From assembly GCA_002269645.1 (NCBI GenBank), contig NIVC01000921.1, positions 248,001-312,000 of the forward strand: DNA of 64,000 nt. The letters are read 5' to 3'. The notes under the pieces are model-generated. The model had not been told where the DNA came from. It ran no database searches and saw only the letters and a program-made list of their open reading frames with translations. Numbering within the stretch: position 1 is the first letter of the stretch; each line of letters opens with the position of its first letter. This document shows positions 23,085 to 64,000 of the stretch, in pieces. Made by a program: the position numbers and the translations under genes. The stretch is from Macrostomum lignano (Eukaryota).

Positions 23085-25905
23085 ATGGAATCTGTGCCAG
23101 CCGCGCCCGCCTTGGATCACGTGACTGCGCTGCAACGCGGCGAGACTCTGGTCCGCGCGGCCGCCTACATCGGCTCCTTTGCCGTTGAGGGCGCGGATCC
23201 GCGGCACCGCTCAGAATTCGCGCACCGCGAGCTGGACAGAATGCGCAACTACAACCGGTCCAAACCGGTTCAGCTCTGGTTGGCGCTGTCCGGCATTAAG
23301 GTGTTGCCATTCGGGCCTGGGAGATAAGAATTATCCTCGGGAATTTCCCGCTAGCCCTTATAAAGTCCAATCATGGCTTTTTAGGTTTTCCTGTATTACC
23401 GACAAGATCGAAATGTTACGCTTATTAATTATTAATCAGCTGTTTTCACCAAGTCAGACAGCAGATGTTTCTCCATGTCAAATGCGGATATTTAGTAATA
23501 AAAAGCCAATATAAACGCATTAATATTCGATTAAAGGTCTGCGACGAGTTCGGGCGCACAGTCTACATGGCGCACGCGCTGAGGCGAATCTCCTACGCCA
23601 GCTGCAACCCGGACCACTGCCAGTTCGCTTTCATGGCTCGCGAGCCCAAGGCTCAGGTCAATCTCCAATACTGCCACGCATTCGTCACTGTGCACCCGGA
23701 CTTAGCCGAAGAGCTTAACAATTTGGTTGGCGACTGTTTTAAGCTGGCCTACACCCTGCAGCAACAGCAGAAGCAACAACAGCAGAAACAGCAGCAGCAG
23801 ATTCTGTTACAACAACAGCAACAACAGTACGTCAAAAAGCAACCTCTACAACAGCCACAGCCGATCAATAAACAGCAGCAGGTACAACAGCAATTGCAAA
23901 TGTACCAACAGCAGCAGCAACTGCAAAAAAAACAACAGCAGGAGCAACAGCAGCAACTGCAGCAGCAAATTCAACAACAACAACAACAACAACAACAGCA
24001 ACGCCCAGCCCGTCGCTCAGAGGCAGCCCAGCAAACGACGCCACCGCCACTAGCTGATGAGTCGACTCGACGCTGTTCGCAGCTCGGCAGTTCGTCGGCT
24101 GGTTCCCAGCAGCAGCAGCAGCAACCGCCGCCGCCACCAAGGGACAACAGCTGCTGCTTGGACCAGTCAGTGTCCAGCAGCTCCTCGTTGGCCAACATGC
24201 AGTGGTCAACTACGGATCAAACTTTACCTGAATCAACTGTCACGCAGCAACAACAACAGCAGCAGCAGCAGCAACAGCCTCGACGAAATCGCAGGTCAGG
24301 CCGCGAATATCTCGCAACCGTCGGAGGCATCGCAGGCAATGGAGCTTCAACTGCTGCAGCCGCGGGTACTGTTGGTGACACTACTCCCTCGCCGCCACCG
24401 CCGCCTTTGCCAGCACGGTGAGTCTGGAAGAACTTTCTCTGATGTGTCTTTCCACCTCAGTCGGTTGTGTCTCCCCACCCAGTCGGTTGTGTCTCCCCAC
24501 CCAGTCGGTTGTGTCTCCCCACCCAGTCGATTGTGTCTCCCCACCCAGTCGGTTGTGTCTCCCCATCCAGTCGGTTGTGTCTCCCACCCAGTCGGTTGTG
24601 TCTCCCACCCAGTCGGTTGTGTCTCCCCACCCAGTCGGTTGTGTCTCCCCACCCAGTCGGTTGTGTCTCCCCACCCAGTCGGTTGTGTCTCCCACCCAGT
24701 CGGTTGTGTCTCCCCACCCAGTCGGTTGTGTCTCCCCACCCAGTCGGTTGTGTCTCCCCACCCAGTCGGTTGTGTCTCCCACCCAGTCGGTTGTGTCTCC
24801 CCACCCAGTCGGTTGTGTCTCCCACCCAGTCGGTTGTGTCTCCCACCCAGTCGGTTGTGTCTCCCACCCAGTCGGTTGTGTCTCCCACCCAGTCGGTTGT
24901 GTCTCCCCACCCAGTCGGTTGTGTCCCCCACTCCGGATGGCTTCAACCGTAGCAGCGGCCAACTTGGCGCACCGGACATCACCAACAGATCTTCGCCAGC
25001 GTCGGCTTCGTCTACATCAGCGCAGTCGTCGCAGCCGCCGCCGCTGTCCGCTGAGGATTCGGAGGAGGCCGGCGTGGAGGAGCCGCCGGTGAACGCCGAC
25101 TGGTACCAGGCCGACATGCCGCGTGACACCGCTCTGGGCCTGCTCAGCCGGGAGGAGGTCGGCGCCTTCATAGTGCGGGACAGCGGCACACATCCCGGCT
25201 GCTACGCGCTGTCTGTCCGGGTTGCCCGGTCGGACAATCCGAGCGGCTTCGCACACTACCTGGTCCAGCGGACTCAGCGCGGCTGCGTCCGGTTGAAGGG
25301 CCTTGCCAAGGTGAGGAGCTTGTAGCCTTCTATTAGGATTAGTTTGGTTTGCAGTGGACTGGTGATCTAGTCTAAGGACTGTTGATCTAGTCTAAGGACT
25401 CGTGATCTAGTCTAAGGACTGTTGATTTAGTCTAAGGACTGGTGATCTAGTCTAAGGACTCGTGATCTAGTCTAAGGACTGTTGATCTAGTCTAAGAACT
25501 GGTGATCTAGTCTAAGGACTGTTGATCTAGTCTAAGGACTGGTGATCTAGTCTACGCACGGACGGTCAAGTCTAAGGATTGTTGATCCAGTCTCAGGACA
25601 TGATGAGGCCGGGTGATTAACTGATAATGCATTGGTGCCTGTCCCAGGAGTGGCCCGGCCTGCAGTCGCTGGTGTGCCATCTGTCGGTGATGCCGGAGCT
25701 GCTGCCCTGCCCGCTGCGGCTGCCCCGCCATCGCCAGGAGGAGGACAACCCGGTGTACACCGACGACCGGGCTCTGGGCGGCGCCACCACGGCCAGCGAC
25801 GAGCAGGATGGTGTCGGCTGCCCCTACGGCCTGGGACTGCCGCCAGACGAAGATTATCAGAGGCTGTCCGATTTCAGCTCCATCATGGCTGAGCTGCGCA
25901 TGTGA
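23085..25905 (+). CDS. SH2D5: PTB + SH2 domain adaptor protein with long polyQ/Pro linker (SH2D5-like), about 570 aa, 4 exons
   Basis: Exons 23085-23300, 23537-24417, 24953(or 24956)-25310 and 25648-25905 are phase-consistent. The PTB segment MAHALRRISY...CQFAFMAREP matches my recollection of the SH2D5 family. The SH2 segment is WYQADMPRDTALGLLSREEVGAFIVRDSGTHPGCYALSVRV...EWPGLQSLVCHLSVMPELLPCPLRLP. Confidence 0.85.
24455..24925. repeat. 22/23-bp minisatellite CCACCCAGTCGGTTGTGTCTCC(C) in intron 2 of the SH2D5-like gene
   Basis: Tandem copies between donor 24418 and acceptor 24952. Confidence 0.95.
25355..25600. repeat. 20-bp minisatellite GATCTAGTCTAAGGACT(G/C)(G/T)T in intron 3
   Basis: Period 20. 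Confidence 0.9.
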
Positions 25906-26034: not shown

Positions 26035-26815
26035 TACACAGTCACGATACACACTCAGTCATGATGCACACTCAGTCATGATGCACACTCAGTCATGATA
26101 CACACTCAGTCATGATGCACACTCAGTCATGATGCACACTCAGTCATGATGCACACTCAGTCAGGATGCACACTCAGTCATGATGCACACTCAGTCATGA
26201 TGCACACTCAGTCATGATACACAATCAGTCACGATGCACAATCAGTCACGATGCACACTCAGTCATGATGCACACTCAGTCATGATGCACACTCAGTCAC
26301 GATGCACACAGTCATGATGCACACTCAGTCATGATGCACACTCAGTCATGATGCACACTCAGTCACGATGCACACTCAGTCATGATGCACAATCAGTCAC
26401 GATGCACACTCAGTCAGGATGCACACTCAGTCATGATGCACACTCAGTCATGATGCACACTCAGTCATGATGCACACTCAGTCAGGATGCACACTCAGTC
26501 ATGATGCACACTCAGTCAGGATGCACACTCAGTCATGATGCACACTCAGTCAGGATGCACACTCAGTCACGATGCACACTCAGTCAGGATGCACACTCAG
26601 TCATGATGCACACTCAGTCAGGATGCACACTCAGTCACGATACACACTCAGTCACGATACACACTCAGTCACGATGCACACTCAGTCATGATGCACACTC
26701 AGTCATGATGCACACTCAGTCACGATGCACACTCAGTCACGATGCACACTCAGTCACGATGCACACTCAGTCATGATGCACACTCAGTCACGATGCACAC
26801 TCAGTCACGATGCAG
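26035..26815. repeat. 17-bp minisatellite CACTCAGTCA(T/C/G)GATGCA
   Basis: Period 17. Confidence 0.95.
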
Positions 26816-28144: not shown

Positions 28145-31100
28145 TTAATTTAGCGAATCCACAATTTGCCGCAGGGAGTCCGCAGCGGACTCTGCACTCG
28201 GACGGGAGTCTGGAGTGCCGCTCCAACAGCGCTCCATCAGGCTCCAGAGCTGGTCGGGCATGCCCGGCAGCCGCTTGGGTCGGCGGTCCTGGGCACCGGG
28301 TAGCTGGATTGGCCCGAAGCTGGGCAGGAGCTCAACGTACTCCGGGTGGCGCCTGCCAGTGCCTTCGCTGCGGGAATCGGGGTAAATGGGGGGCATCGGT
28401 GTATAGAGAGCTGCACAGTAGGATGGACAACAAACGCAAACGCTATTTAGTTAGGCCAAGAAGTTTTCCCTCCGGCACTGTTTTTAGTGGTTATTACTTA
28501 CAACCTCAAGATTTTCATAGTAGATGGATGTTTAAAAAGGCTATGCATTTATTTAGCTAGTCTTGGTGTGACATACCCTTCAAATTGCCTAGAAGAGGTT
28601 TGTAGCCTAGTGGAAGGAGTTTTAACCTAGTGGTTAGAGCGTCTGACTCACGACTGAAAGGTCGGGGGTTCGATTCTCGACTCCAATCGGAACAATACGT
28701 GTCCTTGGGCAAGGCACTTAACTCTGCATTGCTTCAGTTCACCCAGCTGTAAAATGGGTGCCAGCATTAGCTGGGGTAATTGAGGGTGTGTGTGGCGACC
28801 CCATAATGATATACATTGGACTGAACAGCCGTACGCAGCCTTCAGATGCGCCGCTCAATAGCTGCGGCTGAGTGGTTGCACATCTGGCCATTAGGGCAGG
28901 TGTAATCAATTATTACGACTTATTACCCTCCAAAGAGGCACCTTACTCACAACAAATACCAAAGAGCAATTCCAAGACTGAAGACATCAGTGCTCGCGTC
29001 GGGACTGGACCTGCCTGTGGCAATCTCTGGCGCTAAGTAGACCGGAATGCTGGTCGTTTGCTGGTTGTTATGGCTGTAGCACTTCACTATCCCGAACGGC
29101 GCTAGCTTCACCTTGTTCAAATCTTCGTTAACCTAGAAGAATAATTCGAGCCAATTTCAAAGCAAGAAAGCCAAGCTTTTAACGCATGTACAAAAATAGC
29201 TCGTCGATTTTCATACCCAAACATTGCTCAGTGCAACATCCTGATGAACGAGCTCGCTGGAGTGAAGAAACTGCAGAGACGTCGCAATCCGTAAGCCGAT
29301 CTTCAAGCGCTGTTTTACGGGCAGGCTGTAGCGCTGCATCAGAGTCCAGGCGTCGCAGAGCATCAGCTCCATGTAGATCTCCACCGTGTACCAGTTCTCT
29401 TCCGGCCGTCTCTTGTGCAGCCGCACGCCGACTACATGAACCAGATTTGGATGCTCAAAAGCGCTGGAATGATACGGCATAAAAATCGATATTCATGCAT
29501 AATGCAGACTGCAATGTTCAGAAAAAAATTGTGAATTTTTATTATTTTTAAACTGGTCATAAGAAGACCTGTCAAAAGTTATTCATTTGTGAGATTATTT
29601 GAAATGGACGCCCGAAGTACACAGTTCTTTAAATAAGAGTAAGTCTTTTTAATTTCGACTTTTGACTCGTTTCGTTTTAAGCACGTCTTCGAACGACCAT
29701 TCCAAAACAGGCTTTTTTTACCATAAATACATGAAGCTGCATTACCTGCTGTGGTACACCTCTGTCGCAATGTCGTCCAGACTAGTTTCACAGGAAATTA
29801 TCCTTTTAGCTGCGAGCGTTGGCTCGCCGATCTCATTCAAAACTCGAAACATATCGCATTGAGCCGCAGATCCAAGCTTTCCTTCCGTGTCAATTCGAAA
29901 TCCGCGAAACTTGTACTTTGAGGTAACATCCATCGTAAGCAGGTGAAGTCGAGCGACTCTCGGGTAAAGAGCCTTGATATCGGATCGCTCTTTCTCGGTC
30001 AGCTTCATGGATTTTTCGACCAGCTGTTCCGATGACGTGATTTTTTCGACGAACTCCCTGTGCTGGTTTTCGAACCACCCATTTAGTGAAGTGATGAGGC
30101 AGTCAACGAGATTTTCCTTGCTGACTGAACCTGCAATTATACATTTGCATGTAAAAATAGCGCTTCAATCATTTCTTTACGTAACTTATCATGGAAAGGC
30201 AATCGAAAAGTACAATAAAATCAAGATCCCAAGAGCGAATAGCAAAGCACGCCATGAAAACCCATTGTTTCAAAGATGTGAAAAAACTCACTAAGATAGA
30301 CATCTGCTTGATATTCCTTCCACCTTTCATCTTCAACAGGAGTAGACATTGACAGTACAAGACCTGGATTCTTCACTATTAGCTTGATGAAGTGCTTCAT
30401 CTTTCTGAGGATAATGCTAAAAGGACCCAGCATAAAGTCCTTCGAAGACAACGAGTAGCCCACGAGCAGCGTCTTCTTCAACACCTGGTACGCAGGCGTC
30501 TGTTCCACATCCTTCTCGTACTCTGCGACTACCTGCTTCAAACGATCGAAATCGTTTTGACAAGTCTTCAGAGCCCCATCCTTGAGGAAGTCGCAGAATG
30601 ACGCAATTATTCTGTCGTTGATGAGAGCATGAATCTCATCGACGCACTTCTTCTCAATGTCTTTCTGAGACATATCGGCTGAAATCACCGATTCCGAGTA
30701 CTTCAGCGCTCTGACTTCGTCGAGAATGAGCGGCTTTCTTTCGGCGAAGAATAGACCTGCTTGTCTCAACAGCTCGTCTCGATTTTTCTCCACGATGCTC
30801 ATCGACTGCTGGTAGGTCTTCTGCTCCAAGCTCTTGACTTGGTAGAGCGCCTTCTTCTTGCGCAAGTTCGACTCTTTGATGTTGGTGGCCTTGTCCATGA
30901 ACAGTGTGAGAATCTCGCTTTGAATGCGCCTCAGGCCGCCACCAGAACTCACGATGAGGTTTCGAAATTGATCCTGAGCGAACTTGAGAATTCTCGTCTT
31001 GACCTCCTCGAATCGTCTGACCCACTTTGAGTTCTCCATCTCCTTGAGAGCCTCAGGGTCGAGCTTGTTCTTCTTGATCATGAGTTCCTTTTTGCGACGG

Positions 31101-32346
31101 AATCGCCTCACTTCCCAACACGAGACGCAAAGGAACTTGTTGCATGTGTCTCTGGTTTCGTTCGGGCTGATGTAGCCGAGACGCTGCAGCTTAGAGAAGA
31201 CGCGCTCAGCCTTTTCTTCTTCAATCTGCTCCGTTGTGCTTGATGATTCTACCGCTGTTTCTCTGGACACATCCATCTTGGTAATTAGATAGAAAACCTC
31301 AGCTCCAATCTCTGGGAGTTGAATTGCTTTCAAATCTTTCTGGACCTAGGAATGTTTTTCATGTATTTTAGTTCGCAGAAAGTGCGAATTTGATTTGCAC
31401 TGTATTATTACGGGTATTTGAAAGTGCCTCGTGAACAAAAGACCTTACGGCAATTGTGATGCCCGAGTTCGAGTCGATGACGTAGATGATTATCGGTAGA
31501 AACGAGTCGATCGCCCCCAGCGTCAGCGAGTCCAGAGACGAGTTCTCGTTCAGTCCTGGCGAGTCGATAATGTCGATGCCGTGTCGCAGGAACTCGCACT
31601 TGATGCCGGCCTCGACAGTCGAGCTGATGAGCTCATCATTTTCGCGGTCCTCGTCCTTCAGCTTGACGAGGTCCTCCTCGATTGTCGGCTTCTCGAGGTA
31701 CTGGACGTCTCCGATCTGCTCGCCGGTCTTGGATCGCACGAGCACGTAGATTCGGTCGGAGTAGGTGAGCCGGGTGACTCGGGCGGTGCACGGGGACTGC
31801 GACTGGGCCACGAAGGTGCCGCCTAGGAAATACTTGAATCAATGTATATAAAAAACATAAACCTGGTCTCAATGTTTAACTGCAACACATTAGTTCGGGC
31901 TATATGCTGAGTGTGTTCTAGATGGGAGCATTCAGCTTCCTATCATGCGAACATATTTTGCCAGTCTGTATCCTGGGTTTAACTCTCAACTTACCTAAAA
32001 GCTCATTGATGAAGGAGCTCTTGCCCGACTTGGTTTGCCCAACAATGATGATGCACGGCTTGCTGTCATCCTTGGAGCCGGTCTCGTTGCCTCGGTACAG
32101 CCGCTTGATGGCTTTCGTCAGTGTCGGCAGTTGAAGCTTTTGCTTGAGCTCCTCGGATGACTCCACAGACAGGCTGCTGGCGATGGGGCCATCCAGCAGA
32201 GCCTGGGTGCTCTCCAGCTGCTCACGGATCAGGTCGCGGTTGATGTGAAACTCAGAAATTTCTTTCTCCAAAGAGTCAACATCCGACATGGCTAATGCGT
32301 TTTGGAACGACAATTTTAAGCTTTCATTCTTTACCGGTCTAAACAT
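28145..32346 (-). CDS. DSTYK: DSTYK-like dynamin-type GTPase-pseudokinase fusion, paralogue A (about 920-940 aa, 7 exons)
   Basis: Exons 31995-32289 (or from ATG 32346), 31449-31822, 30292-31345, 29746-30130, 29217-29463, 28951-29132 and 28145-28367 all join in frame to a TAA. GTPase motifs: G1 GQTKSGKS, G2 PCT, G3 DSPG, G4 TKMD. The kinase fold has degenerate motifs GSAAQC, HQDVALSN and KLAPFG. The symbol is family-level only. Confidence 0.88.
28601..28925 (+). mobile_element. tRNA-derived CORE-type SINE in intron 6 of paralogue A (antisense to the gene)
   Basis: A-box AGTGGTTAGAGC and B-box GGTTCGATTCT, then GTCCTTGGGCAAGGCACTTAAC...CTGTAAAATGGG (28701-28758), which resembles the MIR/CORE domain. 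Confidence 0.75.
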
Positions 32347-32894: not shown

Positions 32895-33115
32895 AGCTAC
32901 AGAAGGGTTGGGGTGCCAGCTACAGAAGGGTTGGGGTGCCAGCTACAGAAGGGTTGGGGTGCCAGCTACAGAAGGGTTGGGGTGCCAGCTACAGAAGGGT
33001 TGGGGTGCCAGCTACAGAAGGGTTGGGGCGCCAGCTACAGAAGGGTTGGGGTGCCAGCTACAGAAGGGTTGGGGCGCCAGCTACAGAAGGGTTGAGGCGC
33101 CAGCTACAGAAATGT
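32895..33115. repeat. 23-bp minisatellite GCTACAGAAGGGTTGGGGTGCCA
   Basis: Period 23, about 9 copies. Confidence 0.95.
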
Positions 33116-33309
33116 TGGCTGCAACGAGCTGCTTATCAGTAAGCGCAGGGGCGCAGGGAGCCGGATTCCAAGGGTCCATCTTGAAGAAAGTAAAATAAGG
33201 AGATGGCAGCTAGCAGAAAACAGAAGTTTTGCTGAGCTTTGCTTATGTGCCGGTTTCCAGTACGAGCATAGCGTTATACACAAATAACAACATGTAAATG
33301 TCATAAAAC

Positions 33310-35790
33310 ATTAACTGCTTCGCTTGCTGCGGAGCAGACGGTCCCGCTGATGCGGCAAGCGCAGAAATCGCTGCCTGTCTGGCAGAGCGACCCGACCATC
33401 AGGCAGGCGCGCTCAGGCAGTGACGCTGAAGATGCGTTTGAGCGCTTTCTAGACGAGCGGCAGCAGGCCGCTATCGACGACACCGTCCGGACCATCACTG
33501 CAGCCGGCCCCGAAGTGAAGAGCCGTGCAGTTTGGACAGCCTTTCGGACTCTAACGCCACGGGTGCAGAAAGCCCGTGGCACTGAATCTGGTCGGTGACA
33601 CCCCGGAGGAGCGCAGGAATGAATTGCGCGACTTCTTCGCCGGCATCGTGAACGCGCCTGCGTCGCCGCTGCCCACCAGCTTTTCGCTCCCACTGGACAC
33701 GCCGGTCCCAGCTGAGGAGGACTTCTGCACAAGCCCAGTCACCAAAGAGGACGTTGTGCTGTTCGCTCGGAAATCACCAAGCGGCAAGGCGCTCGGCTCC
33801 GCTGTGTGGCCTCCCAGGTCGCAAGCGTCATGAACCGCGTGCTCGCCGGCGCCCCTGCATCCACCGAGTGGACTGTCGCGCACAACATGCTGATCCCGAA
33901 GAAGGCAGGGACAACGCGGAAAGAAGACCACCGCGGGATCTCGCTGATGTCCTGCACCGCGAAGCTCTTCAACCGGCTGCTGCTCGATCGTCTGCAGTCT
34001 GTGATGGACCCGTACCTGCGGGGTACGAGCAGAACGGATTCCGGTCGCAACGCAGTACACTGACACAGATCCTCGCACTCCGCAGTATCATCAAAGAGGC
34101 GCGCATCCGCCAGTCTACGCTGATCATGTCTTCGTTAACTTTCGAAAAGCGTTTGACTCAGTGTTGAGAGACGCGCTTACCTTTGTCCTTCGAGCAGAAC
34201 GAGTCCCGCAGCAGCTAATCGACGCTGTCGATACTGAGATACTCGAGCTGCTGTGGTGACGGCGGACGGCCTGTCTGACCTGTTCGACACCTCATCAGGA
34301 GTTCTGCAGGGCGACGCGCTAGCGCTGTTCCCCTCTCTCTCTGAACCGCACGTCCCGATGTCAGCCGGGCTGCGAGGGACGGGGCGCTAGATGCGCCCCA
34401 GCCTGCAAAGTAGGTCGATGGTCGTTTTCGCGTCCGCCAGAAGGGCATCTTGCTCGCTGGGGCGGGCCGCGAACCCTCTTGGGCAGCCAAACAGGATGTT
34501 GTTGCTCGGTGTCACGTGCTCCGCAGTCCGGGCACACGTCGGAGTCGGACAGGCCGAGCCGGAATCTGGTGGCGGCGGCGAGGTTGCTGCAGCCGGCACG
34601 GAGCTGGTTGACCAGGACCTCTAGTCTCCTCAGGAGGGCTGGGAGCTTTGGCCACGAGCGTTGCGGCCCCAAAGCTCGAGATCTAGTTTTCGTCTTTTGG
34701 CATGGCAGCCAGGTAAGCACTGGCTGTCATGAGGGGCGCGTCATGATTGCTCTGATCAGCGGTCGCCAATCTAGCCGGCCTGTCTGCGCGTTCATTCATG
34801 GGGATGCCGCAGTGAGCCGGGATCCAGGTGATGCGGATGGAGTGTCCGTTACTCTGGTTCCAAATTTCGGATACGAGCCGGCTGTTGCTGCGCTGGCCCG
34901 CCATGATGCTGTGAATGGCCGCCTGGGAGTCGGTGAAAATGTCGATACATTGATGTTCTCTAGTATTCTGAATGGCCAGCAGGATGGCTTGTAGCTCTGC
35001 CTGGGTGCTGCTGCAGATATTCCCTGCAGCGCTGGTGACGACCCGGCCCCAGGATGGAGTGATGATCACCGCTGTAGTCGGTCCAGACGCTAATCGGGTG
35101 GGAGCCGCGCTCCTCGAGGTACCTCAGTGCTGTTGCGCTGCGGAGAGCGCCGTTCCTCTTCGTGCTGCTGCTGGACTGGGTTCACCTACCTCGGCGGTCT
35201 GGTACTCCACGTGGTGAAAGTCCTCCGGCGGCGCAGAGGACTTGCCTGGGTGACCTTCCGTTCGATCCGAGCCGTCCCTCAGTCCGAAGCGCTGCCCGAC
35301 CGCCAGACAGCTCGGCTATGGTAGGCGATGGTCGAAACCATCCTGCTATACAACGCCGAGACGTGGACGCTGACGGCTACGCTAGAGCGGCAGCTGGACT
35401 CGGCACACCCAGGGCTGCTCCGTGCGGCCTTTCGAGCTGACGAGAGCGTCGAGACCGAGGCCCTGTACGATCGGGCCAAGCTGCGGCGCCCGTCCATCAT
35501 CCTGCGCCGGCGGCGACTTCAACTGGCGGGCCACGTGATCCAGGCCGAGGGCTACTGCCCCCAACCTGTTCAGGACGTCCTGCTGCTCACCTTGCAGGGT
35601 CCGCTCATTCGGGGTCAGGCCCGACCTGGACTGCCTGCTATGCAAAGCAGGGGCGCCCGACACTGCCAATGGGGCGAACTTTGTCCGCTCTCAGGCTCTG
35701 CGGCGCTCCATCTGACGCGCCCTACTCTCACTGGGAGGCTGCATGCGAGCAAGCTGCGTATTTTGTTAGTGCTGTTGTTTGTTTTACAGT
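33310..35790 (+). mobile_element. RTE-clade LINE relic (copy 1), 5'-truncated, interrupted by an antisense RNase H fragment
   Basis: IPKKAG..HRGISLMSCTAKLFNRLLL, NFRKAFDSV, GVLQGDALA, FTYLGG and ETILLYNAETWTLT, with a (TTG)-rich tail. Frameshifted. Confidence 0.8.
34332..35150 (-). mobile_element. 3' fragment of an RNase H-bearing LINE (I/Ingi-like) nested in RTE copy 1
   Basis: STQAELQAI, IFTDSQAAI, ITWIPAHCGIPMNERAD and CPDCG motifs, with a (GA)n tail on the minus strand. The right boundary is approximate. Confidence 0.75.
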
Positions 35791-36300
35791 GCCAATTCAG
35801 AAAAGGCCTTAATAACGAGTGCGTCCTTCGCGAGCAAGACAGAAATTCTTCGCGGCATCCCCGGAATGAGGCACCGCAAAAATCTTGAGGAAGACTTTTG
35901 GCGCAGGCCTGGCGCAGTTGCATGACATTGTGTGGCGGATTCTCTTACACTCTCATTCTCAAAGTGAGGTCCGAGAGAAGCTGCTTGCTGGCGCAAAGGA
36001 TGGCGACTTCAATGTTGCTGAGTATAGCTACAGATAATACTGGAAAAATCACCAAAAGACTTGCACACTGCTCATTAGTATAGACTCTTCGGTTTGATTT
36101 TAACAAAAAGGCTTCACAAAATACACTTGGAAATATGTTAAAGTGTTGGTGTGGCGTTCATTCGCGACCTGGCCTTGAAGCGCGCCCTCTTCTGTCTGTT
36201 GAGTATGCGTATTCGTATTCTGTTGTCTGTTGTGTTCACCCCAAGTTAAGTTGGTCAACAAATGGCAGCTTTAATCCTTTCCTTTGCTTCAGTTTCTCGC

Positions 36301-41934: not shown

Positions 41935-44900
41935 CTAAGACTCCAGCGAGTCCACAATCTTCTGCAGGGATTCTACAGCTTCCTCCGCTGTCGGTCTGGA
42001 GTCTGGGGTGCCGCTCCAGCAGCTCTCCATCAGGTCCCACAGCTGGTCGGACATGTTGGGCAGCCGCGTCGGTCTGCAGTCCAGGGCGCTGGCGAGCAGG
42101 ATGGCCCCGACACTGGGCATGATCTCGACGTACTCCGGGTGGCGCTTGCCCGTGCCTTCGCTGTGGATTTAAATCAATGGCATCTCGCATCAATCGCTCG
42201 AGAATCTCTGTCAGCTCGTCCGCTACCTAAGGGCTACCGGCTGAGTGATCATCCACATCTTTGACTCTCCGGGGGCCGCGCTGCAAGACATCTAGCATTC
42301 CAACTCTCGTCTGCAGTGCGGCCCTCTATCGGGAGGCATTCCCGGAGGCACTGTAGAATTCCTAACGAGCTGTTACCCCCTGTAGATGTTCTATAACATC
42401 GCGCAATCTTTTTTGAACTTACAAAAGATACCAAAGAGCGATTCCAAGACTGAAGACGTCCGCGCTCGTGTGGTAGCTCTCGCCTCGGACCAGCTCAGGC
42501 GCAAGGTAGATTGGCGTTCCAACTAAGGTTCGGTTTACAAAGCCTGTACTCTTCACGAGTCCGAAGTCCGACAGCTTCACTTGTCTTAAATCTTCACTCA
42601 CCTGAGGGTTTTTAAGGTGTTGTGAGCTGTTAAAATCATAAAAAACAGTCGGTCCACTCTCAAAAAAATGCTTACGAGGACGTTGGCGAGTTTCAAGTCT
42701 CTGTGAATCAGCTCGCTCGAGTGAAGGAACTGAAGGGCCTTCGCCAGCTCCAAGCCAATCTTCAGGCGCTGTCGAACGGGCAGCCTGTGGCGCTGCATTA
42801 GATTCCAGGCGTCGCAGCACATCAGCTCCATGTAGATCTCTACTGTCCATCGCTTCTCATCAGGTTTGCTTTTGTGGAGCCTCACGCCGACTACGTGCAC
42901 GAGATTATCATGCTCGAGAACGCTGGAATGTAACAACTTCTCATGCTATTATGAGAACTAGAAGTTATGCGATCGAAATATGTGTACTATATCTACTCAA
43001 GTATAGTAACTTACCTGCTGTGGTACACTTCCGTTGCGATATCGTCAAGACTAGGCTCGTCGGATACGATTCTCTTGGCCGCTAGCGCTGGCTCTCCGCT
43101 CTCGTTCAAAACTCGGAACACCTCACCTTGCGCTCCGGATCCGAGATTTCCTTCCGTGTCGATTCGGAACCCGCGGTACTTGTACTTGGAGATAACATCC
43201 ATCGTAAGCATATGCAGTCGAGCAACTCGTGGGAATAGAGACTTGATCTCGGATCGCTCCTCCTCGGTCAGTTTCATACCGCTTTCAACTAGCTGCTCCG
43301 ATGAAGCAATGTTGTCAAGAAACTCTCTGTGCTGCTTTTCTAACCATTCCTTCAGCCAGGTGATGAGGCGCTCGACAAGAATGTTTTTGTTGATTGCCTC
43401 TAAATCAGAAAATGTCAAAAAATAATTTAAAACTGTACGAGCTACAAGTACGAGCTACTTCGACCCTCTATACCATAGAAAACTACAATTTCTGAAATAT
43501 ACAGTACGTGTACTTACCTAGATACTTTTCTGCCTGATATTTCTTCCACTTTGGATCCTGGATCGGTGTCGAGGTTGAAAAAACGAGCCCTGGTTTTGTA
43601 ACTATTTTTATCACGAAAAATTTTATCTTGAATATTATAAAACCCAAACAACTCAGTTTCAATTCCTCCAGCGACACCGAATAGCTCATGAGCATTGTCT
43701 TCTTCAACACCTGGTACGCGGGCGTCGGATTCACATCCTTCTCCAACTCCGCCATTAGATTCTTCAAGTCGAAGCCCTTAAGGCCATGATTCTTGAAGAA
43801 GTCGAAGAATGAAGCAATTATTCTGTCGTTGATGAGAGCATGAATCTCATCGACGCACTTCTTCTCAATGTCTTTCTGAGACATATCGGCTGAAATCACC
43901 GATTCCGAGTACTTCAGCGCTCTGACTTCGTCGAGAATGAGCGGCTTTCTTTCGGCGAAGAATAGACCTGCTTGTCTCAACAGCTCGTCTCGATTTTTCT
44001 CCACGATGCTCTTAGACTGCTGGTAGGTCTCCTGCTCCAGGCTCTTGATTTGGTAGAGCGCCTCCTTGCGCAAGTTCGACTCTTTGATGTTGGTGGCCCT
44101 GTCCATGAACAGTGTGAGAATCTCGCTTTGAATGTGCATCAGTTCATCACCAGACCTCACGATGAGGTTTCGAAATTGATCCTGAGCGAACTTGAGAATT
44201 CTCGTCTTGACCTCCTCGAATCGTCTGACCCACTTTGAGTTCTCCATCTCCTTGAGAGCCTCAGGGTCGAGCTTGTTCTTCTTGATCATGAGTTCCTTTT
44301 TGCGACGGAATCCCCTTACTTTCCAACACGAGACGCAAAGGAACTTGTTGCATGTGTCTCTGGTTTCGTTCGGGCTGATGTAGCCGAGACGCTGCAGCTT
44401 AGAGAAGACGCGCTCGGCCTTCTCTTCTTCAATCTCCTGCGCTGGTTGATTGGCTTCCTGCTCTGTGTCTTTCGAGACATCCATCTTAGTGACAAGATAG
44501 AACACCTCAGCGCCAAGCACCGTTTTCTTAATCGTTGTTAAGTCCTTTTGGACCTGCAGTTTTAGTATTTCAGTGGAAGAATATAATTTCAACAGAATTG
44601 CTAACAGAAATATAGAGTTTTCTCTGGATTCCTTTCACACCAATTATTATTAATGATCATAGATTGTACGATAGCCGCGAGCCACAATACATTATTAGAA
44701 GTCTGAAATTTTTATTAGAACTTACGGCAATGGTGATGCCCGAGTTGGAGTCGATGACGTAGATGATGATCGGTAGAAACGAGTCGATCGCCCCCAGCGT
44801 CAGCGAGTCCAGAGATGAGTTCTCGTTCAGTCCTGGCGAGTCGATGATGTCGATGCCGTGTCGCAGGAACTCGCACTTGATGCCGGCCTCGACAGTCGAG

Positions 44901-45895
44901 CTGATGAGCTCGTCATTCTCGCGGTCCTCGTCTTTCAGCTTGACGAGGTCCTCCTCGATTGTCGGCTTCTCGAGGTACTGGACGTCTCCGATCTGCTCGC
45001 CGGTCTTGGATCGCACGAGCACGTAGATTCGGTCGGAGTAGGTGAGCCGGGTGACTCGGGCGGTGCACGGGGACTGCGACTGGGCCACGAAGGTGCCGCC
45101 TGCGAATATCGAGCGCATTTTGTATTATGAAATTATGCATGGTCCTGGTTTTACTGGCTCAAAGATACTCATCAGCTACCGGATTTTCTTTTAAGTGGAA
45201 TCTGAGCAGCAAAACTAAGCTTGCTGTGTGTACAGTGATTTCTACGAATTTGAAAAAATATTCTGTCCTCACGTGAGAAGAATATTCATCTATCTTTTTG
45301 CAGGAGTGCAAAATGGTATTTAATTTTTTTGTAATGCTAATCAATGCATTGGGAGTTTTTTGCATGTTATATCAACTTATTCGGTGAATTTCCATTGAGA
45401 GAAATGAAATTAAACTTCAATTATATCAAATTTACTACTGTAAGTAGACAACAATTCGTGGTTCCTGCTGAGCAGATCTAAATGAATTTTATGGATACAA
45501 GCTTGAGAAATGAAAAAAAAACATTGACAGCGCTGACATTGACAGAATTTTATTTAACAAAAGTTAAACAGCTGCTCACCCAGAAGTTCATTGATGAAGG
45601 AGCTCTTGCCCGACTTGGTCTGTCCAACAATGATGATGCACGGCTTGCTGCTGTCACTGGAACCCGTCTGGTTGCCCCTGTACAGCTGGTTCACCTTTTG
45701 TCTCACGTCTTCAAATTTTAGCGACTCTTGCAATTTTTCTGAGAATTCCGGAGACAAAGCCTTCGAAAAGCTTTCCGTTAACAGTCTCTGCGTAGTGTCC
45801 AGGTGCTCTTTGATCAGGTCCCGGTTGCTTCGGAATTCGGCGAGTTCCTGGTCCAGAAAGCCGATCGGCTGCGCCTCCGCTTGCGAGATGGCCAT
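41935..45895 (-). CDS. DSTYK: DSTYK-like dynamin-type GTPase-protein kinase fusion, paralogue B (920 aa, 7 exons)
   Basis: Exons 45580-45895, 44726-45099, 43518-44553, 43015-43399, 42676-42922, 42423-42601 and 41935-42160 total 2763 nt in frame. G1-G4 are intact. Kinase motifs GSGAQG, LAAK, HRDLKLAN, DFG, GTPIYLAPE and DVFSLG are intact. The symbol is family-level only. Confidence 0.9.
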
Positions 45896-46889: not shown

Positions 46890-47200
46890 ATTCCCAAGAC
46901 AGCAAGCATCCCTTCAGATAGCAAGCATCCCCCTCCAAAAGTAAGCAACCACAGATAGCAAGCATCCACCCAGATAGCAAGCATCCCCCCAGATAGCAAG
47001 CATCCCCCAGATATTGTTGAAGCATCCACCTAGATAGCAAGCATCCCCCCAGATAGCAAGCATCCCCCCAGATAGCAAGCATCCACCCAGATAGCAAGCA
47101 TCCTGCAGATAGCAAGCATCCCCCAAATATTGTAGAAGCATCCACCCAGATAGCAAGCATCCTGCAGATAGCAAGAATCACTAAATAGCAAGCATCCCTG
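46890..47200. repeat. 18-20-bp minisatellite GATAGCAAGCATCCCCCA
   Basis: Recurring AGCAAGCATCC core. Confidence 0.9.
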
Positions 47201-47224
47201 GATAGAAAAAATCCCATACATGTA

Positions 47225-48800
47225 GCCAAGCTTATCAAGCGCAGTAATCCTTTGTTTGCCAAGTGCAATAACCCTTGATTTATCAAGTGCAGAAATCCTT
47301 GGTTTATCAAGCGCAGTAATCCTTAGCTTATTAAGTGCAGCAATCCTTGGTTTATCAAGCGCAGTAATCCGTGGCTTATCAAGTGCAATAATACTTGGCT
47401 TATCAAGTGCAATATTCCTTGGTTTATCTAGTGCAATATTCCTTATTATCAAAATGCAATAATCCTTGGTTTATCAAGCGCAGTAATCCTTAGCTTATCA
47501 AGTGCAGTAATACTTGGCTTATCAAGAGCAATAATCCTTGGCTTATCAAGTGCAATAATCCTTGGCTTATCAAGTGCAATAATATTTGGTTATCAAGTGC
47601 AATATTCCTTGGTTTATCAAGTGCAATAATCCTTGGCTTATCAAGTGCAGTAATCCTTGGCTTATCAAGTGCAGTAATACTTGGCTTACCAAGAGCAATA
47701 ATCCTTGGCTTATCAAGTGCAATAATCCTTGGCTTATCAAGTGCAATAATATTTTGTTTATCAAGCGCAGTAATCCTTAGCTTATCAAATGCAGTAATCC
47801 TTAGTTTATCAAGCGCAATAATATTTGGTTTATCAAGTGCAATAATCCTTGGCTTATCAAGTGCAGTAATCCTTGGCTTATCAAGTGCAGTAATACTTGG
47901 CTTATCAAGTGCAATAATCCTTGGCTTATCAAGTGCAATATTCCTTGGTTTATCTAGTGCAATATTCCTTATTATCAAAGTGCAATTATCCTTGGCTTAT
48001 CAAGTGCAGTAATCCTGGGCTTATCAAGTGCAGTAATCGTTAGTTTATCAAGTGCAATAATATTTGGTTTATCAAGTGCAATAATACTTGGCTTATCAAG
48101 TGCAATAATCCTTGGCTTATCAAGTGCAGTAATCGTTGGTTTATCAAGTGCAATAATATTTGGTTTATCAAGTGCAATAATACTTGGCTTATCAAGTGTA
48201 GTAATCCTTCGATTATCAAGTGCAGTAATCAGTGGCTTATCAAGTGGAGTAATCCTTGGCTTATCAAGTGCAATAATCCTTGGCTTATCAAGTGCAATAT
48301 TCCTTGGTTTATCTAGTGCAATATTCCTTATTATCAAAGTGCAATAATCCTTGGCTTATCAAGTGCAGTAATCCTTCGCTTATTAAGTGCAGTAATCGTT
48401 AGTTTATCAAGTGCAATAATATTTGGTTTATCAAGTGCAATAATCCTTGGTTTATCAAGTGCAATAATCCTTGGTTTATCAAGTGCAATAATCCTTGGTT
48501 TATCAAGCGCAGTAATCCTTGGTTTATCAAGTGCAATAATCCTTGGTTTATCAAGTGCAATAATCCTTGGTTTATCAAGCGCAGTAATCCTTGGTTTATC
48601 AAGTGCAATAATCCTTGGTTTATCAAGTGCAATAATCCTTGGTTTATCAAGTGCAATAATCCTTGGTTTATCAAGCGCAGTAATCCTTGGTTTATCAAGT
48701 GCAGTAATCCTTGGCCTATCAAGTGCAGTAATCCTTAGTTTATCAAGTGCAATAATTTTTTGTTTATCAAGTGCAGTAATCCTTGGTTTATCTAGCATCA
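47225..48800. repeat. 24-bp minisatellite TTATCAAGTGCAATAATCCTTGG(T/C)
   Basis: Period 24; the source of the RIIALDKP repeat ORFs. Confidence 0.95.
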
Positions 48801-49946
48801 TAATCCAGGTCTTTTTAATTAGTCCTTTAATAAAAGCTTTCAATAATAAATTTATGCTACTTTTATTTTTTATTACACTTCTAAGATTCGAACCCAGGTT
48901 GCTGCATTAGCAATCCAGTGTGTTTACATCTAGGCTAGCTCTCATTGAAATTATAAATGAATTTGTAGCACTTATAATTCAACACTCACACCAAGTCTAT
49001 TGAGTTAAAGTCACACGAAGCAGTTATATGACATAATCAATTTCTTAGGCAAGTCAGTACCAGTCTCTATTAAAGTTAGCAATATGGTTACGCAATATAA
49101 ATCAAGAATTGTGCTATGCTTTCACACTGCGTTTTCAATACTGTGACGCAATTCAAATCGGTGTCAAAATTCAGCCAGTACACAGACTGAATAAATAAAA
49201 AGCCTATTGTGATGCAATCTATTTCAGAATCAGAATTCAACCAGTCAGTTTTTTCTCTAGCATTCTTACAATGCATTTCAAGTCGAAAGAGCTGCTTGAC
49301 CTTTGCAAAAAAGCATGTTTTTCGAATATTTAATCCCTTTAGCATTGACCAATTTCTTAGCCACGATGCATGTACCGTCACGGGAAAATTTCTGATCGAA
49401 CAGTGCAAGTTCGAAGAAAATCGGTTGAGCCGTTTTTGCTAAAATCGATCGCATACCTAGATAGAAAGCTTAGTCTCAATGTCCAACTGCTGGTCATATG
49501 CGGAGGGTGTTCCAAGTGGGGTCTGGCTTTTGCACTTTCGAGCGTGCGCGGGTGTTGTCGGATGTTGCGTTGTGCCCTTTCTATTGTTGTGCAAAGCCGG
49601 ATCGCAACCCTAGTTTTCCAGCGGACGAGCAATGTGATGGCGTCAGTTAACTGGCCTGACTGACTTCGGACTCGGAGCGTGGGATCGCGTCAAAGAGGCT
49701 TGGTCAGCCCGTCCCTATGGCACAAATCGAACCCAGCCAGTCCCACAAATAAGTAAGAAACGCGACTCACTCTCGACTTCAACACAACAGCGGCAACGGC
49801 GGCGGCAGGGGCGGATTCTCTCAAATTCTGGCAGTGCAACTTCTAAGCAGAGATTGATGTTTAGTTCAGTTGTTGCGGTGGTAGTTGCTGAGCCTAGCTC
49901 GGCACCAAGGTGGCCTCCCCTACCGCCGCTCATGCAAACATATATA

Positions 49947-55204
<5,258 letters not shown>

Positions 55205-58390: not shown

Positions 58391-58533
58391 CAGTGCCAAT
58401 TCAGAAAAGGCCTTAATAACGAGTGCGTCCTTCGCGAGCAAGACAGAAATTCTTCGCGGCATCCCCGGAATGAGGCACCGCAAAAATCTTGAGGAAGACT
58501 TTTGGCGCAGGCCTGGCGCAGTTTCATGACAAT

Positions 58534-60237: not shown

Positions 60238-63200
60238 CTAAGACTCCAGCGAGTCCACAATTTTCTGCAGGGATTCTACAGCTGCCTTCGCTGTCGGCCT
60301 GGAGTCTGGAGTGCCGCTCCAGCAGCTCTCCATCAGGTCCCACAGCTGGTCGGACATGTTGGGCAGCCGCGTCGGCCTGCAGTCCAGGGCGCCGGCGAGC
60401 AGGATGGCTCCGACACTGGGCATGATCTCGACGTACTCCGGGTGGCGCTTTCCCGTGCCTTCGCTGTGGATTTAAATCAATGGCATCTCGCATCAATGCT
60501 CGAGAATCTCTGCTTGCTCGTCCGCTACCTCAGGGCTACCGGAAGAGTGATCACCCACCTCTTGGACTCTCCAGGGCGACTGCGCTGCAAGATATCTGGC
60601 ATTCCAACTGTCTGCAGCGGCCCCTCAGGCAGTGTAGAATTCCTCACGAGCTATTACCCCCTAATAATAATTTACCCCATTACCTAATAACATCGCGCAA
60701 TCTTTTTTGAACTTACAAAAGATACCAAAGAGCGATTCCAAGACTGAAGACGTCCGCGCTCGTGTGGTAGCTCTCGCCTCGGACCAGCTCAGGCGCAAGG
60801 TAGATTGGCGTTCCAACTAAGGTTCGGTTTACAAAGCCTGTACTCTTCACGAGTCCGAAGTCCGACAGCTTCACTTGTCTTAAATCTTCACTCACCTTAG
60901 GGTTTGTAAGGGTTTGTGGGCTGTTAAAATCATAAAAAACAGTCGGTCCACTCTCAAAAAAATGCTTACGAGGACGTTGGCGAGTTTCACGTCTCTGTGA
61001 ATCAGCTCGCTCGAGTGAAGGAACTGAAGGGCCTTCGCCAGCTCCAAGCCGATCTTCAGGCGCTGTCGAACAGGCAGCCTGTGGCGCTGCATCAGATTCC
61101 AGGCGTCGCAGCACATCAGCTCCATGTAGATCTCTACTGTCCATCGCTTCTCATCAGGTTTGCTTTTGTGGAGCCTCACGCCGACTACGTGCACGAGATT
61201 ATCATGCTCGAGAACGCTGGAATGTAACAACTTCTCATGCTATTATGAGAACTAGAAGTTATGCGATCGAAATATGTGCACTATATCTACTCAAGTATAG
61301 TAACTTACCTGCTGTGGTACACTTCCGTTGCGATATCGTCAAGACTAGGCTCGTCGGATACGATTCTCTTGGCCGCTAGCGCTGGCTCTCCGCTCTCGTT
61401 CAAAACTCGGAACACCTCACCTTGCGCTCCGGATCCGAGATTTCCTTCCGTGTCGATTCGGAACCCGCGGTACTTGTACTTGGAGATAACATCCATCGTA
61501 AGCATATGCAGTCGAGCAACTCGTGGGTATAGAGTCTTGATCTCGGATCGCTCCTTCTCGGTCAGCTTCATACAGCTTTCGACTAGTTGCTCCGATGAAG
61601 CAATGTTGTCAAGAAACTCTCTGTGCTGCTTTTCGAACCATTCTTTCAGCGAGGTGATGAGGCACTCGACAAGATTTTCTTTGCTGATTGTACCTGAAAC
61701 AAATGAAGACAAATAGCTGATTGTGCAATGGTAGCCTAGATAATTTAATTGAAAAGCGAGTAGTTCGACCGTTTATACCATAGAAAATGACAATGTCTGA
61801 CATACAAAGTTTATTACTAACCTAGATACTTTTCTGCCTGATATTCCTTCCACTTTTGATCCTGGATCGGTGTGGAGATTGACAGAACGAGACCTGGATT
61901 TCTTACCATCTGTCTCACGAAATGCTTTATCCTGAATATTATAACATTCAAAGGACCCAATAAGAAGTCCTTTGACGACAACGAGTAGCCTTCGAGAAGC
62001 GTCTTCTTTAACACCTGGTACGCGGGCGTCTGTTCCACATCCTTTTCGTACTCTGCGACTTTCTGCTTTAAGTCGTCGAATTCCTGTAGGCACAATCTCA
62101 GAGCCCCATCTTTGAGGAAGTCGCAGAATGACGCAATAATTCTGTCGTTGATGAGAGCATGAATCTCATCGACGCACTTCTTCTCAATGTCTTTCTGAGA
62201 CATATCGGCTGAAATCACCGATTCCGAGTACTTCAGCGCTCTGACTTCGTCGAGAATGAGCGGCTTTCTTTCGGCGAAGAATAGACCTGCTTGTCTCAAC
62301 AGCTCGTCTCGATTTTTCTCCACGATGCTCTTAGACTGCTGGTGGATCTCCTGCTCCAGGCTCTTGATTTGGTAGAGCGCCTTCTTCTTGCGCAAGTTCG
62401 ACTCTTTGATGTTGGTGGCCTTGTCCATGAACAGTGTGAGAATCTCGCTTTGAATGCGCCTCAGGCCGCCACCAGAACTCACGATGAGGTTTCGAAATTG
62501 ATCCTGAGCGAACTTGAGAATTCTCGTCTTGACCTCCTCGAATCGTCTGACCCACTTTGAGTTCTCCATCTCCTTGAGAGCCTCAGGGTCGAGCTTGTTC
62601 TTCTTGATCATGAGTTCCTTTTTGCGACGGAATCGCCTTACTTCCCAACACGAGACGCAAAGGAACTTGTTGCATTTCTCTTTGGTTTCGTTCGGGCTGA
62701 TGTAGCCGAGACGCTGCAGCTTAGAGAAGACGCGCTCAGCCTTCTCTTCTTCAATCTCCTGCGCTGGTCGATTGGCTTCCTGCTCTGTGTCTTTCGAGAC
62801 ATCCATCTTAGTGACAAGATAGAACACCTCAGCGCCAAGCACCGTTTTCTTAATCGTGGTTAAGTCCTTTTGGACCTGCAGTTTTAATATTCAATGCAAG
62901 AATATTGTCAAAGTTTATATTTACAGTTTTATCGTACTCATATATACACAGAATTCTTCTTAGGTGTTAGCTACTAGAAGCAAAAAAAGTAATAACTTCT
63001 ACTTTGAATATACCAGCTCAGACAACAGCTAACTTTTTACTTTTTGGATACATATGCTCTCTCTGTTGACTATACTATGCAGTAGAAAATAGTAAAGAAT
63101 GGGAAGTAGAAAAACACGTCGGGTTTTCCCTGAATGCTTCCATTTCAATAACCAGCATCGATTGTCCTACGGTAGTACCGCACTGCAAGTGTCAGTTCAT

Positions 63201-63608
63201 TGATAGAATTATGCCAGTTTGTAATGGAACTCACGGCAACGGTGATGCCCGAGTTCGAGTCGATGACGTAGATGATGATCGGTAGAAACGAGTCGATCGC
63301 CCCCAGCGTCAGCGAGTCCAGAGACGAGTTCTCGTTCAGTCCTGGCGAGTCGATGATGTCGATGCCGTGTCGCAGGAACTCGCACTTGATGCCGGCCTCG
63401 ACAGTCGAGCTGATGAGCTCATCATTCTCGCGGTCCTCGTCTTTCAGCTTGACGAGGTCCTCCTCGATTGTCGGCTTCTCGAGGTACTGGACGTCTCCGA
63501 TCTGCTCGCCGGTCTTGGATCGCACGAGCACGTAGATTCGGTCGGAGTAGGTGAGCCGGGTGACTCGGGCGGTGCATGGGGACTGCGACTGGGCCACGAA
63601 GGTTCCGC
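60238..63608 (-). CDS. DSTYK: DSTYK-like dynamin-type GTPase-protein kinase fusion, paralogue C (exon 1 lies beyond the window end)
   Basis: Exons 63235-63608, 61822-62875, 61309-61693, 60970-61216, 60717-60895 and 60238-60463 have the same phases as B. DSPG, TKMD, GSGAQG, HRDVKLAN, DFG and APE are intact. 63630-64000 is homologous to intron 1 of B (45120-45495). Confidence 0.88.
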
Positions 63609-64000
63609 CTGCGAATATCGAGCGCATTTTTTGTTATGAAATTATACACATTGTCCTGGTTTTACTGGCTCAAAGATACTCATCAGCTACCGGATTTTCT
63701 TTCAAGTGAAATCTAAGAATCAAATCTAAAGTGTGGACAGGGATTTCTAGAAGTTTGTCTTCAATTTGAGGAGAATATTATTCTCCAAATAAAATAGTAT
63801 TATTTTTGAATGAAGATTTGGGCATTAATGCTTGTCAAGGCATTGGGAAAAATTTTGCTAGTTTAGCTCAGATAATCTGTGTTCTTATTGGGTGAATATC
63901 CTTTGAGAGGAAAATTAACATTCATCTATATCTTGTATACTACTGGAAGTAGACAACAATTTGCTGTTCCTTCGTAGCAGATCTAAATGGATTTTATCTA

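Follow-up and report, generated by a model that had tools for sequence, protein, structure and literature searches.

In the window analysed here, a stretch of 64,000 nucleotides (nt) of the Macrostomum lignano genome, a gene called paralogue A combines an intact reading frame with a protein kinase domain in which several catalytic motifs are degenerate. The question raised by this locus is whether such a gene is decaying or maintained. It could be answered from sequence by combining an old split from the neighbouring genes with a recent twin copy and a gene model built from RNA data. The favoured reading, with a probability of roughly 0.7, is that A is a functional DSTYK-family gene with a kinase domain that has turned into a pseudokinase. 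The window was 100% identical to contig NIVC01000921.1 of the Mlig_3_7 assembly (GCA_002269645.1), window position x corresponding to record position x + 248000.

Gene structure and family assignment

Three kinase catalytic loops were detected on the minus strand of the window by a six-frame motif scan. Frame reading and splice-aware gene models placed them in three tandem, DSTYK-like genes on that strand, A, B and C, each with seven exons and with GT-AG introns throughout. Paralogue A (28145-32289) encodes 919 amino acids (aa). Paralogue B (41935..45895, 920 aa) has canonical kinase motifs throughout and was used as comparator. Paralogue C (60238..64000) also has canonical motifs; its exons 2-7 lie inside the window and exon 1 lies past the window end. 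It corresponds to GenBank PAA74831.1 (BOX15_Mlig021056g2). Four more paralogous loci (E, D/D2, C' and F) were taken from the same genome, and motifs were compared among eight paralogous sequences, A and seven others (B, C, C', E, D, D2 and F). The order of the local tandem cluster is D-C-B-A.

The gene model of A has 919 codons, a single terminal stop, six GT-AG introns and compatible exon phases, as an earlier reading of the sequence alone (the sequence-only reading) had maintained in calling every exon open and phase-correct. Exon 1 (31995..32289) encodes a divergent N-terminus and the P-loop GQTKSGKS (32017-32040), exon 2 (31449..31822) the dynamin-type GTPase core with the G3 motif DSPG (31554-31565), and exon 3 (30292..31345) the end of the GTPase domain (TKMD, 31271-31282) and the long helical middle region. 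The interval 28145-30130 comprises precisely exons 4-7 and is bounded by the stop codon and the opening base of exon 4. Exon 4 (29746..30130) contains a helical linker, the glycine-rich loop (G-loop) GSAAQC (29856-29873), the beta3 Lys in AAKRI (29799-29813) and the alphaC Glu (29751-29768). Exon 5 (29217..29463) extends from alphaC-beta4 to the catalytic loop HQDVALSN (29223-29246), and exon 6 (28951..29132) carries PFG (29091-29099), SIPVY (29037-29051), APE (29025-29033) and DVFSLG (28971-28988). Exon 7 (28145..28367) encodes the end of the kinase C-lobe and the stop codon (28145-28147). It follows an AG acceptor and is joined in phase 2, ALWYLF being continued by EGTGRRHPEYVE, at the same boundary as in the RNA-derived model of a second copy, A', described below.

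An in-frame ATG about 19 codons further 5' (about 32346, counted by hand) is presumably an alternative start, and P0001, an A-like UniProt entry, begins at this upstream ATG. A third A-like UniProt entry, P0011, has frame-switching segments and two amino-acid differences, and represents either a real third copy or errors of an older assembly.

The proteins of A, B and C share an N-terminal dynamin-type P-loop GTPase, a long helical middle and a C-terminal protein kinase. Pfam profiles matched the N-terminal part of A with Dynamin_N (E=5e-20) and the kinase domain with PK_Tyr_Ser-Thr (E=4e-26) and Pkinase (E=3e-22). The nearest database proteins to A, B and C were named dual serine/threonine and tyrosine protein kinase(-like), that is, DSTYK or 'Dusty'. 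In an end-to-end architecture test, 36 retrieved proteins matched both halves, including DSTYK(-like) proteins of Lingula, Tubulanus, Ptychodera and Apostichopus. Paralogue A is assigned to the DSTYK family by architecture and similarity. The dynamin-superfamily motifs G1 (GQTKSGKS), G3 (DSPG) and G4 (TKMD) are all present, and by motifs and profile match its N-terminal part is classified as a dynamin-superfamily GTPase, for which GTP hydrolysis and nucleotide-dependent oligomerisation are predicted.

Degenerate kinase motifs

Four kinase motifs differ between A and its canonical paralogues. In the G-loop, GSGAQG is changed to GSAAQC with replacement of two glycines. In the catalytic loop, HRD[L/V]KLAN is changed to HQDVALSN (R to Q and K to A), with the Asp and the Asn retained; the catalytic-loop Lys is replaced by Ala and no compensating Arg is found nearby. 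DFG is changed to PFG, where the codon change GAC to CCG altered all three bases. In the activation segment, GTPIY is changed to SIPVY, and 13 of the 19 residues between DFG and APE are unlike those of B. The beta3 Lys (AAKRI), the alphaC Glu (ATEVYH), the HxD Asp, the catalytic-loop Asn, APE and DVFSLG are kept. Residue equivalence was checked by phmmer alignment to the Src/Abl-ancestor kinase 4csv and to the seven paralogues. All four replacements named by the sequence-only reading were recovered in the motif scan and the paralogue alignment, and its list of kept elements (beta3 Lys, alphaC Glu, APE, DVFSLG) agreed with the residue assignment from 4csv; the HxD Asp and the catalytic Asn are kept in addition to those it listed.

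The 13 canonical catalytic positions were invariant in all seven other paralogues, and five of them were altered in A alone, a pattern beyond chance that marks the degenerate state as derived on the A branch. When D and F served as outgroups, exons 4-7 showed 49 lineage-specific replacements in A and 14 in B/C. The kinase exons of A/A' are only about 75% identical to those of B/C. Several catalytic codons of A carry two to three hits each (GAC to CCG, AAA to GCA, AGA/CGA to CAG), which makes the loss of the motifs an old event on the A branch. By the Manning-type criterion, a pseudokinase has lost at least one of the VAIK Lys, the HRD Asp and the DFG Asp; in A and A' the DFG Asp is Pro. The kinase domain of A is a pseudokinase by this standard residue criterion, and loss of phosphotransfer is predicted.

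Long-term selection on the kinase exons

The ratio of nonsynonymous to synonymous divergence (dN/dS, omega) in exons 4-7 was calculated with the NG86 method. It was 0.23 for A against B and 0.21 for A against C, at a synonymous divergence (dS) of about 0.92. Branch models were fitted with our own implementation of the GY94/F3x4 codon likelihood. The unconstrained estimate of omega_A depended on the rooting because the outgroups D and F were saturated at synonymous sites. Since unconstrained models cannot place the synonymous changes, a clock was imposed between A and its sister clade, which lies in the same genome and the same neighbourhood. The clock-constrained model gave omega_A=0.32 and omega_BC=0.14. 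Neutrality of A (omega_A=1) was rejected (twice the log-likelihood difference 48, p=4e-12), as was equality of omega_A and omega_BC (p=1.4e-4). The kinase-like domain of A is relaxed about 2.3-fold relative to B/C and yet clearly constrained on average. The dN/dS check proposed with the sequence-only reading, here run on exons 4-7 against the B and C paralogues, thus gave 0.21-0.23, far below 1.

The chance that an unconstrained copy survives intact was estimated for the same exons. Random substitutions create stops in 3.8% of cases in exons 4-7 of A, and frameshifting indels occur at 0.086 per substitution, as taken from B-C non-coding DNA. The joint probability that the open reading frame (ORF) and the splice dinucleotides stay intact falls from 0.06 at 2% neutral divergence to 8e-4 at 5%. 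A late switch of A to neutrality is unlikely.

A twin copy of A

An exhaustive search of representative sequences yielded P0025, a correctly spliced A-type fragment. The 90% cluster of P0025 includes GenBank PAA78585.1 (BOX15_Mlig008353g1), which is located on contig NIVC01000677.1. Through P0171, a cluster mate of P0025, a second copy of A, termed A', was reached on this contig at locus L005. The genes of L005 follow the order of the window (D, C', B', A'), and the two loci are colinear with an identity of about 95-98%. This agrees with the short-range identity of roughly 98% that has been reported for paralogous blocks in this highly inbred, neopolyploid line (PMC10733133, PMC5730564).

Like A, A' consists of seven exons with GT-AG introns and 919 codons closed by a single terminal stop, and it carries all the degenerate motifs; these shared motifs place the block duplication after the degeneration of the catalytic residues. 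In exons 4-7, A and A' differ by four synonymous and no nonsynonymous changes. Introns 1-5 differ at 15 of 801 sites (1.9%) and the flanks at 20 of 2195 sites (0.9%). If these exons were neutral, four differences would all be synonymous with a probability of about 0.004, and nonsynonymous changes would be absent with a probability of 5e-7 (intron rate) or 9e-4 (flank rate). Outside one conversion tract, the full coding sequence has 15 synonymous and 4 nonsynonymous differences (p=1.4e-6). In total, 26 differences in the coding sequence separate A from A'. The canonical neighbours follow the same pattern as exons 4-7 of A and A', with two synonymous and no nonsynonymous differences (C/C') and one of each (D/D2). 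Because the degenerate motifs are common to A and A' and the differences are four synonymous to none nonsynonymous, selection acted on the kinase-like domain after it had degenerated.

Intron 6 measures 4100 nt in A' and 583 nt in A. The extra 3.5 kb (L005 22671-26181 versus window position ~28613-28617) contains gag/zinc-knuckle and integrase-like ORFs on the opposite strand and represents a fragment of a long-terminal-repeat (LTR) retroelement. A repeat of about 300 nt in intron 6 of A (28616-28912) recurs near D2 at 87% identity. It appeared tRNA-like by eye; no tRNA was found in it by ARAGORN.

Expression evidence

The GenBank annotation of Mlig_3_7 was made from RNA sequencing data (StringTie/TACO) and a de novo transcriptome alone, and novel transcripts of low expression or overlapping repeats were dropped from it (PMC5730564). 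The annotation pipeline filtered multi-mapping and repeat-overlapping transcripts. When PAA78585.1 was mapped back to L005, it covered exons 3-7 of A' at precisely the predicted boundaries, including the removal of the 4.1 kb intron 6. This is good evidence that an A-type mRNA exists and is spliced as modelled, as seen on exons 3-7 of A'. The positions of poly(A) signals were uninformative.

Age of A and exon-limited gene conversion

The seven exons of A differ widely in their divergence from B and C. The dS values were 1.5 for exon 1, 1.0-1.2 for exons 4-6, 0.5 for exon 7, 0.32 for exon 3 and 0.08-0.09 for exon 2. No similarity was detectable between the introns of A and those of B, whereas B and C could be aligned over introns 3-6 and the flanks; intron 2 gave no match. 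A is an old paralogue that parted from the B/C lineage at a dS of about 0.9.

In a sliding-window comparison, the segment from the P-loop through exon 2 was 96-100% identical at the nt level among A, B, C and the neighbour D, which is otherwise only 50-55% identical. Exon 2 (A 31449-31822, B 44726-45099, C 63235-63608, all on the minus strand) together with the end of exon 1 was 97-98% nt-identical among A, B, C, E and D, with 93-96% identity at third positions and no similarity in the flanking introns. In paralogue F, which lies on a different contig, exon 2 is just 62% identical, which identifies the sameness of this exon as local gene conversion and not as intrinsic conservation. A second conversion tract comprises codons ~265-460 of A in exon 3 (within 30292-31345), with 92-100% nt identity to B/C. 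A and A' differ at codons 393-405, where the sequence of C is present in A'; conversion therefore went on after the block duplication. The pattern indicates that the GTPase and central stalk of A are continually homogenised with the neighbours while the N-terminus and the kinase exons evolve independently.

This exon-limited concerted evolution of the GTPase/stalk exons is a less ordinary feature of the locus than the pseudokinase itself, and the exon restriction makes it a useful example for the study of gene conversion in tandem families. Literature searches on gene conversion in M. lignano gave nothing relevant.

Interpretation and alternative explanations

The presence of A as an intact gene in two genomic copies supports maintenance and not decay. 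The sequence-only reading had proposed the same, and dN/dS below 1, the intact A', the four synonymous to no nonsynonymous differences and the RNA-derived model of A' all bear it out. The kinase region was modelled with AlphaFold2 from a five-sequence family alignment (mean predicted local distance difference test score, pLDDT, 79.5; predicted template modelling score, pTM, 0.82). It shows the usual two-lobed kinase architecture, and confidence was low only for the activation loop and for one loop of the C-lobe. The model is consistent with a retained kinase fold without being strong evidence for it. A Foldseek search with this model returned generic (tyrosine-)kinase structures at a TM-score of about 0.7 and was uninformative on function. 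Loss of the DFG Asp, the catalytic-loop Lys, the HRD Arg and two G-loop glycines would abolish ordinary Mg-ATP phosphotransfer. The kept Lys-Glu pair, HxD Asp, Asn, APE and the core of alphaF and subdomains IX-XI would hold the fold and may permit some nucleotide binding.

Several points weigh against this reading. One unconstrained branch model gave omega_A=0.44 and did not reject omega=1 (p=0.36); the other gave omega_A=0.17 and rejected it. Among family-invariant positions, 5 of 13 catalytic and 20 of 121 other positions are altered in A (Fisher's exact test, one-sided p=0.067). An enrichment of changes at catalytic positions is only suggestive at this p value, and selective inactivation is for this reason not claimed. 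When the sequence-only reading spoke of a selectively inactivated kinase domain, it was right about a degenerate kinase in an intact gene and overstated the selectivity, since the rate of evolution of the whole domain is ~2.3 times that in B/C. Residual or Mg-independent activity may persist, given that A keeps the HxD Asp, beta3 Lys, alphaC Glu and Asn. On the side of expression, the transcript model sits on A' and not on the window copy. GenBank has no protein models for A and B on NIVC01000921.1, where only C and the upstream D2 have them; since the intact, canonical B also lacks a model, this is not evidence that A is silent. The 5' end of PAA78585.1 is chimeric, with exon 1 and the first 116 nt of exon 2 of B' joined within the identical exon 2 of A'. 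A' has its own intact exon 1 (L005 18976-19270), so the chimera is most simply explained, and probably arose, as an artefact of transcript assembly across the converted exon; the alternative is a read-through transcript. For the spliced transcript that the sequence-only reading had put forward as a check, the RNA-derived model covers exons 3-7 of A', with a 5' end from B' and no model for the window copy. Finally, a hetero-oligomerisation of A with B/C, as considered below, is extrapolated from the behaviour of the dynamin superfamily and is not known from any DSTYK. As a side observation, the chimera in PAA78585.1 duplicates 32 residues (L005 10001-26653).

Three other explanations were considered. 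According to the first, selection acts on A as a GTPase/stalk protein only, and the kinase-like domain merely stays folded and soluble without a regulatory role. This is favoured by intact G1, G3 and G4 motifs, which stay the same as in B/C, and by an omega_A in the kinase exons that is 2.3-fold above omega_BC. Against this, the kinase exons of A and A' show four synonymous and no nonsynonymous differences, a pattern like that of the canonical copies, and surface-exposed conserved elements (APE, DVFSLG, subdomain XI) are kept. Moreover, a dispensable domain is usually truncated and not conserved over a dS of about 0.9. A purely passive domain is unlikely.

A second explanation, judged improbable, is that A encodes an atypical but active kinase with an unconventional metal/ATP geometry, like the CASK-type 'pseudokinases' that phosphorylate without Mg. 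The conservation of the catalytic base Asp, the beta3 Lys, the alphaC Glu and the Asn in A and A' is in line with such an activity, and so is purifying selection on the domain. However, 5 of 13 catalytic positions are replaced, and the Pro at the position of the DFG Asp is unable to coordinate metal. Two G-loop glycines are lost, the phosphate-contacting Lys is replaced by Ala without a compensating Arg, and 13 of 19 activation-segment residues differ. In addition, the other family members examined that have a canonical HRD all keep the DFG Asp.

The third explanation, a young unprocessed pseudogene that is undamaged as yet and kept looking intact by conversion from B/C, is highly improbable and was largely refuted by the intact twin, the constraint and the RNA-derived model of A'. 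In its favour, conversion renews the sequence of exon 2 and of part of exon 3, A has no GenBank model on the contig and an unconstrained branch model is compatible with omega_A=1. Against it, the kinase exons are unconverted (dS 0.9-1.2 to B/C) and yet open with intact splice sites in two copies, the catalytic codons carry two to three hits each when the probability of staying intact is <1e-3 after 5% neutral divergence, the A-A' differences are four synonymous to none nonsynonymous, and the RNA-derived model splices exons 3-7 of A'.

For the favoured reading, a maintained pseudokinase, the following mechanism may be considered. Local gene conversion would keep the GTPase and the central helical region of A near-identical to those of its active neighbours B and C. 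Since these are the parts by which dynamin-family proteins assemble, A could join mixed assemblies, co-assembling with B/C through the dynamin-like oligomerisation modules. It would then bring a non-catalytic, kinase-like domain into the assembly as an allosteric partner, a scaffold or a competitor of the active kinase domains. Built by analogy, the mechanism as a whole is tentative, with the odds somewhat against it.

A broader proposal treats the D-C-B-A cluster as a division of labour. The products of the cluster could co-assemble if exon-limited conversion keeps GTPase and stalk interchangeable, and, with the kinase exons exempt from conversion, A would be an obligate kinase-dead subunit that tunes mixed DSTYK oligomers, the hetero-assembly of active and dead members being general and overlooked in DSTYK. 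This is a doubtful extension. If it were true, degenerate DSTYK-like paralogues of hemichordates and amphioxus (see below) would be a sign of general active/dead hetero-assembly, and the proposal would be relevant to a human disease kinase with an obscure mechanism. DSTYK, a poorly understood kinase, has been associated in humans with urinary-tract malformation and with spastic paraplegia. Because M. lignano can be made transgenic and is amenable to RNA interference, it is practical to test whether a dead subunit regulates active DSTYK paralogues.

Relation to known systems

DSTYK/Dusty kinases, comprising vertebrate DSTYK and invertebrate 'DSTYK-like' proteins, share with A the GTPase-like region, the long helical region and the Dusty-type kinase. 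Paralogues B, C, D and F carry the canonical DSTYK motifs LGSGAQG, HRD[LV]KL.N, DFG and VGTPIY. In contrast to canonical DSTYK, A lacks the DFG Asp, the HRD Arg, the catalytic-loop Lys and two G-loop glycines, and in contrast to single-gene DSTYK, M. lignano has the local tandem cluster. No description of the GTPase-like half of DSTYK or of pseudokinase members was found in the searchable literature.

Degenerate full-length DSTYK-like proteins were found in the hemichordates Glandiceps (XP_077984238), Ptychodera (XP_070553798) and Saccoglossus (XP_006822239) and in the amphioxus Branchiostoma (XP_019629833). The catalytic loop reads Y[AGN]DLKPQN in the three hemichordates, with [VL]IN at the position of DFG, and FNDLRVTN in amphioxus, with NLG at that position. 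A further M. lignano paralogue has HGNLHAAN (C-terminal half of P0008, residues ~1270-1557). P0056, P0067, P0095, P0083 and P0084 stand for these hemichordate and amphioxus proteins and for one from a metagenome/Logan source; all of them, and the P0008 segment, have a degenerate catalytic loop and no DFG Asp. In Ptychodera, a canonical copy (XP_070553782) and the degenerate copy lie on one scaffold. The degenerate hemichordate and amphioxus proteins share the GTPase-plus-kinase layout of A, whereas their substitutions differ. With only about 25-30% identity to A, they reflect losses that are independent of the one in A or much older. Kinase-dead members seem to recur in the DSTYK family.

Kinase duplication is well known to leave maintained pseudokinase paralogues next to active copies, and A is a further case. 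STRADalpha-LKB1, HER3-EGFR/HER2, KSR-RAF and JAK JH2 are systems in which a pseudokinase acts on an active kinase partner by allostery or scaffolding. As in these systems, A is predicted to keep the kinase fold, is under purifying selection despite the loss of catalytic residues and has active paralogues, here in its neighbourhood. In contrast to them, A is a putative partner, which would contact the active kinases by way of a separate GTPase/stalk module, instead of or besides dimerisation of the kinase domains. The HxD Asp is kept and the DFG Asp lost in A, which sets it apart from STRAD and HER3. ROCO/LRRK proteins also combine a GTPase and a kinase in one polypeptide, and some lineage-specific members have degenerate kinase domains. 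Their GTPase is of a different type (Roc-COR versus dynamin-like in A), and they are related to A only at the level of the kinase superfamily.

Other features of the window

A retroelement ORF of 760 aa with reverse transcriptase and RNase H is located between C and B (50380-52662, minus strand). A 2.4 kb segment upstream of A (33561-35927) is 95.6% identical to one downstream of C (56154-58531) and belongs either to the duplication unit or to a shared mobile element. On the plus strand, ORFs with PID/PTB and SH2 domains (23465-25325) are probably exons of an SHC-like adaptor and overlap a GC-rich tandem repeat (24443-24931). Long tandem-repeat (satellite-like) arrays were found at 883-2446, 6488-7063, 8636-9840, 10427-11280, 11593-13961, 26036-26814 and 46893-48806. 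Some of these arrays create long spurious ORFs, for example one of 724 aa at 11675-13849. Close to A on its upstream side (32895-33118), a repeat of 66 nt can be read as the 22-aa unit LAPQPFCSWHPNPSVAGTPTLL.

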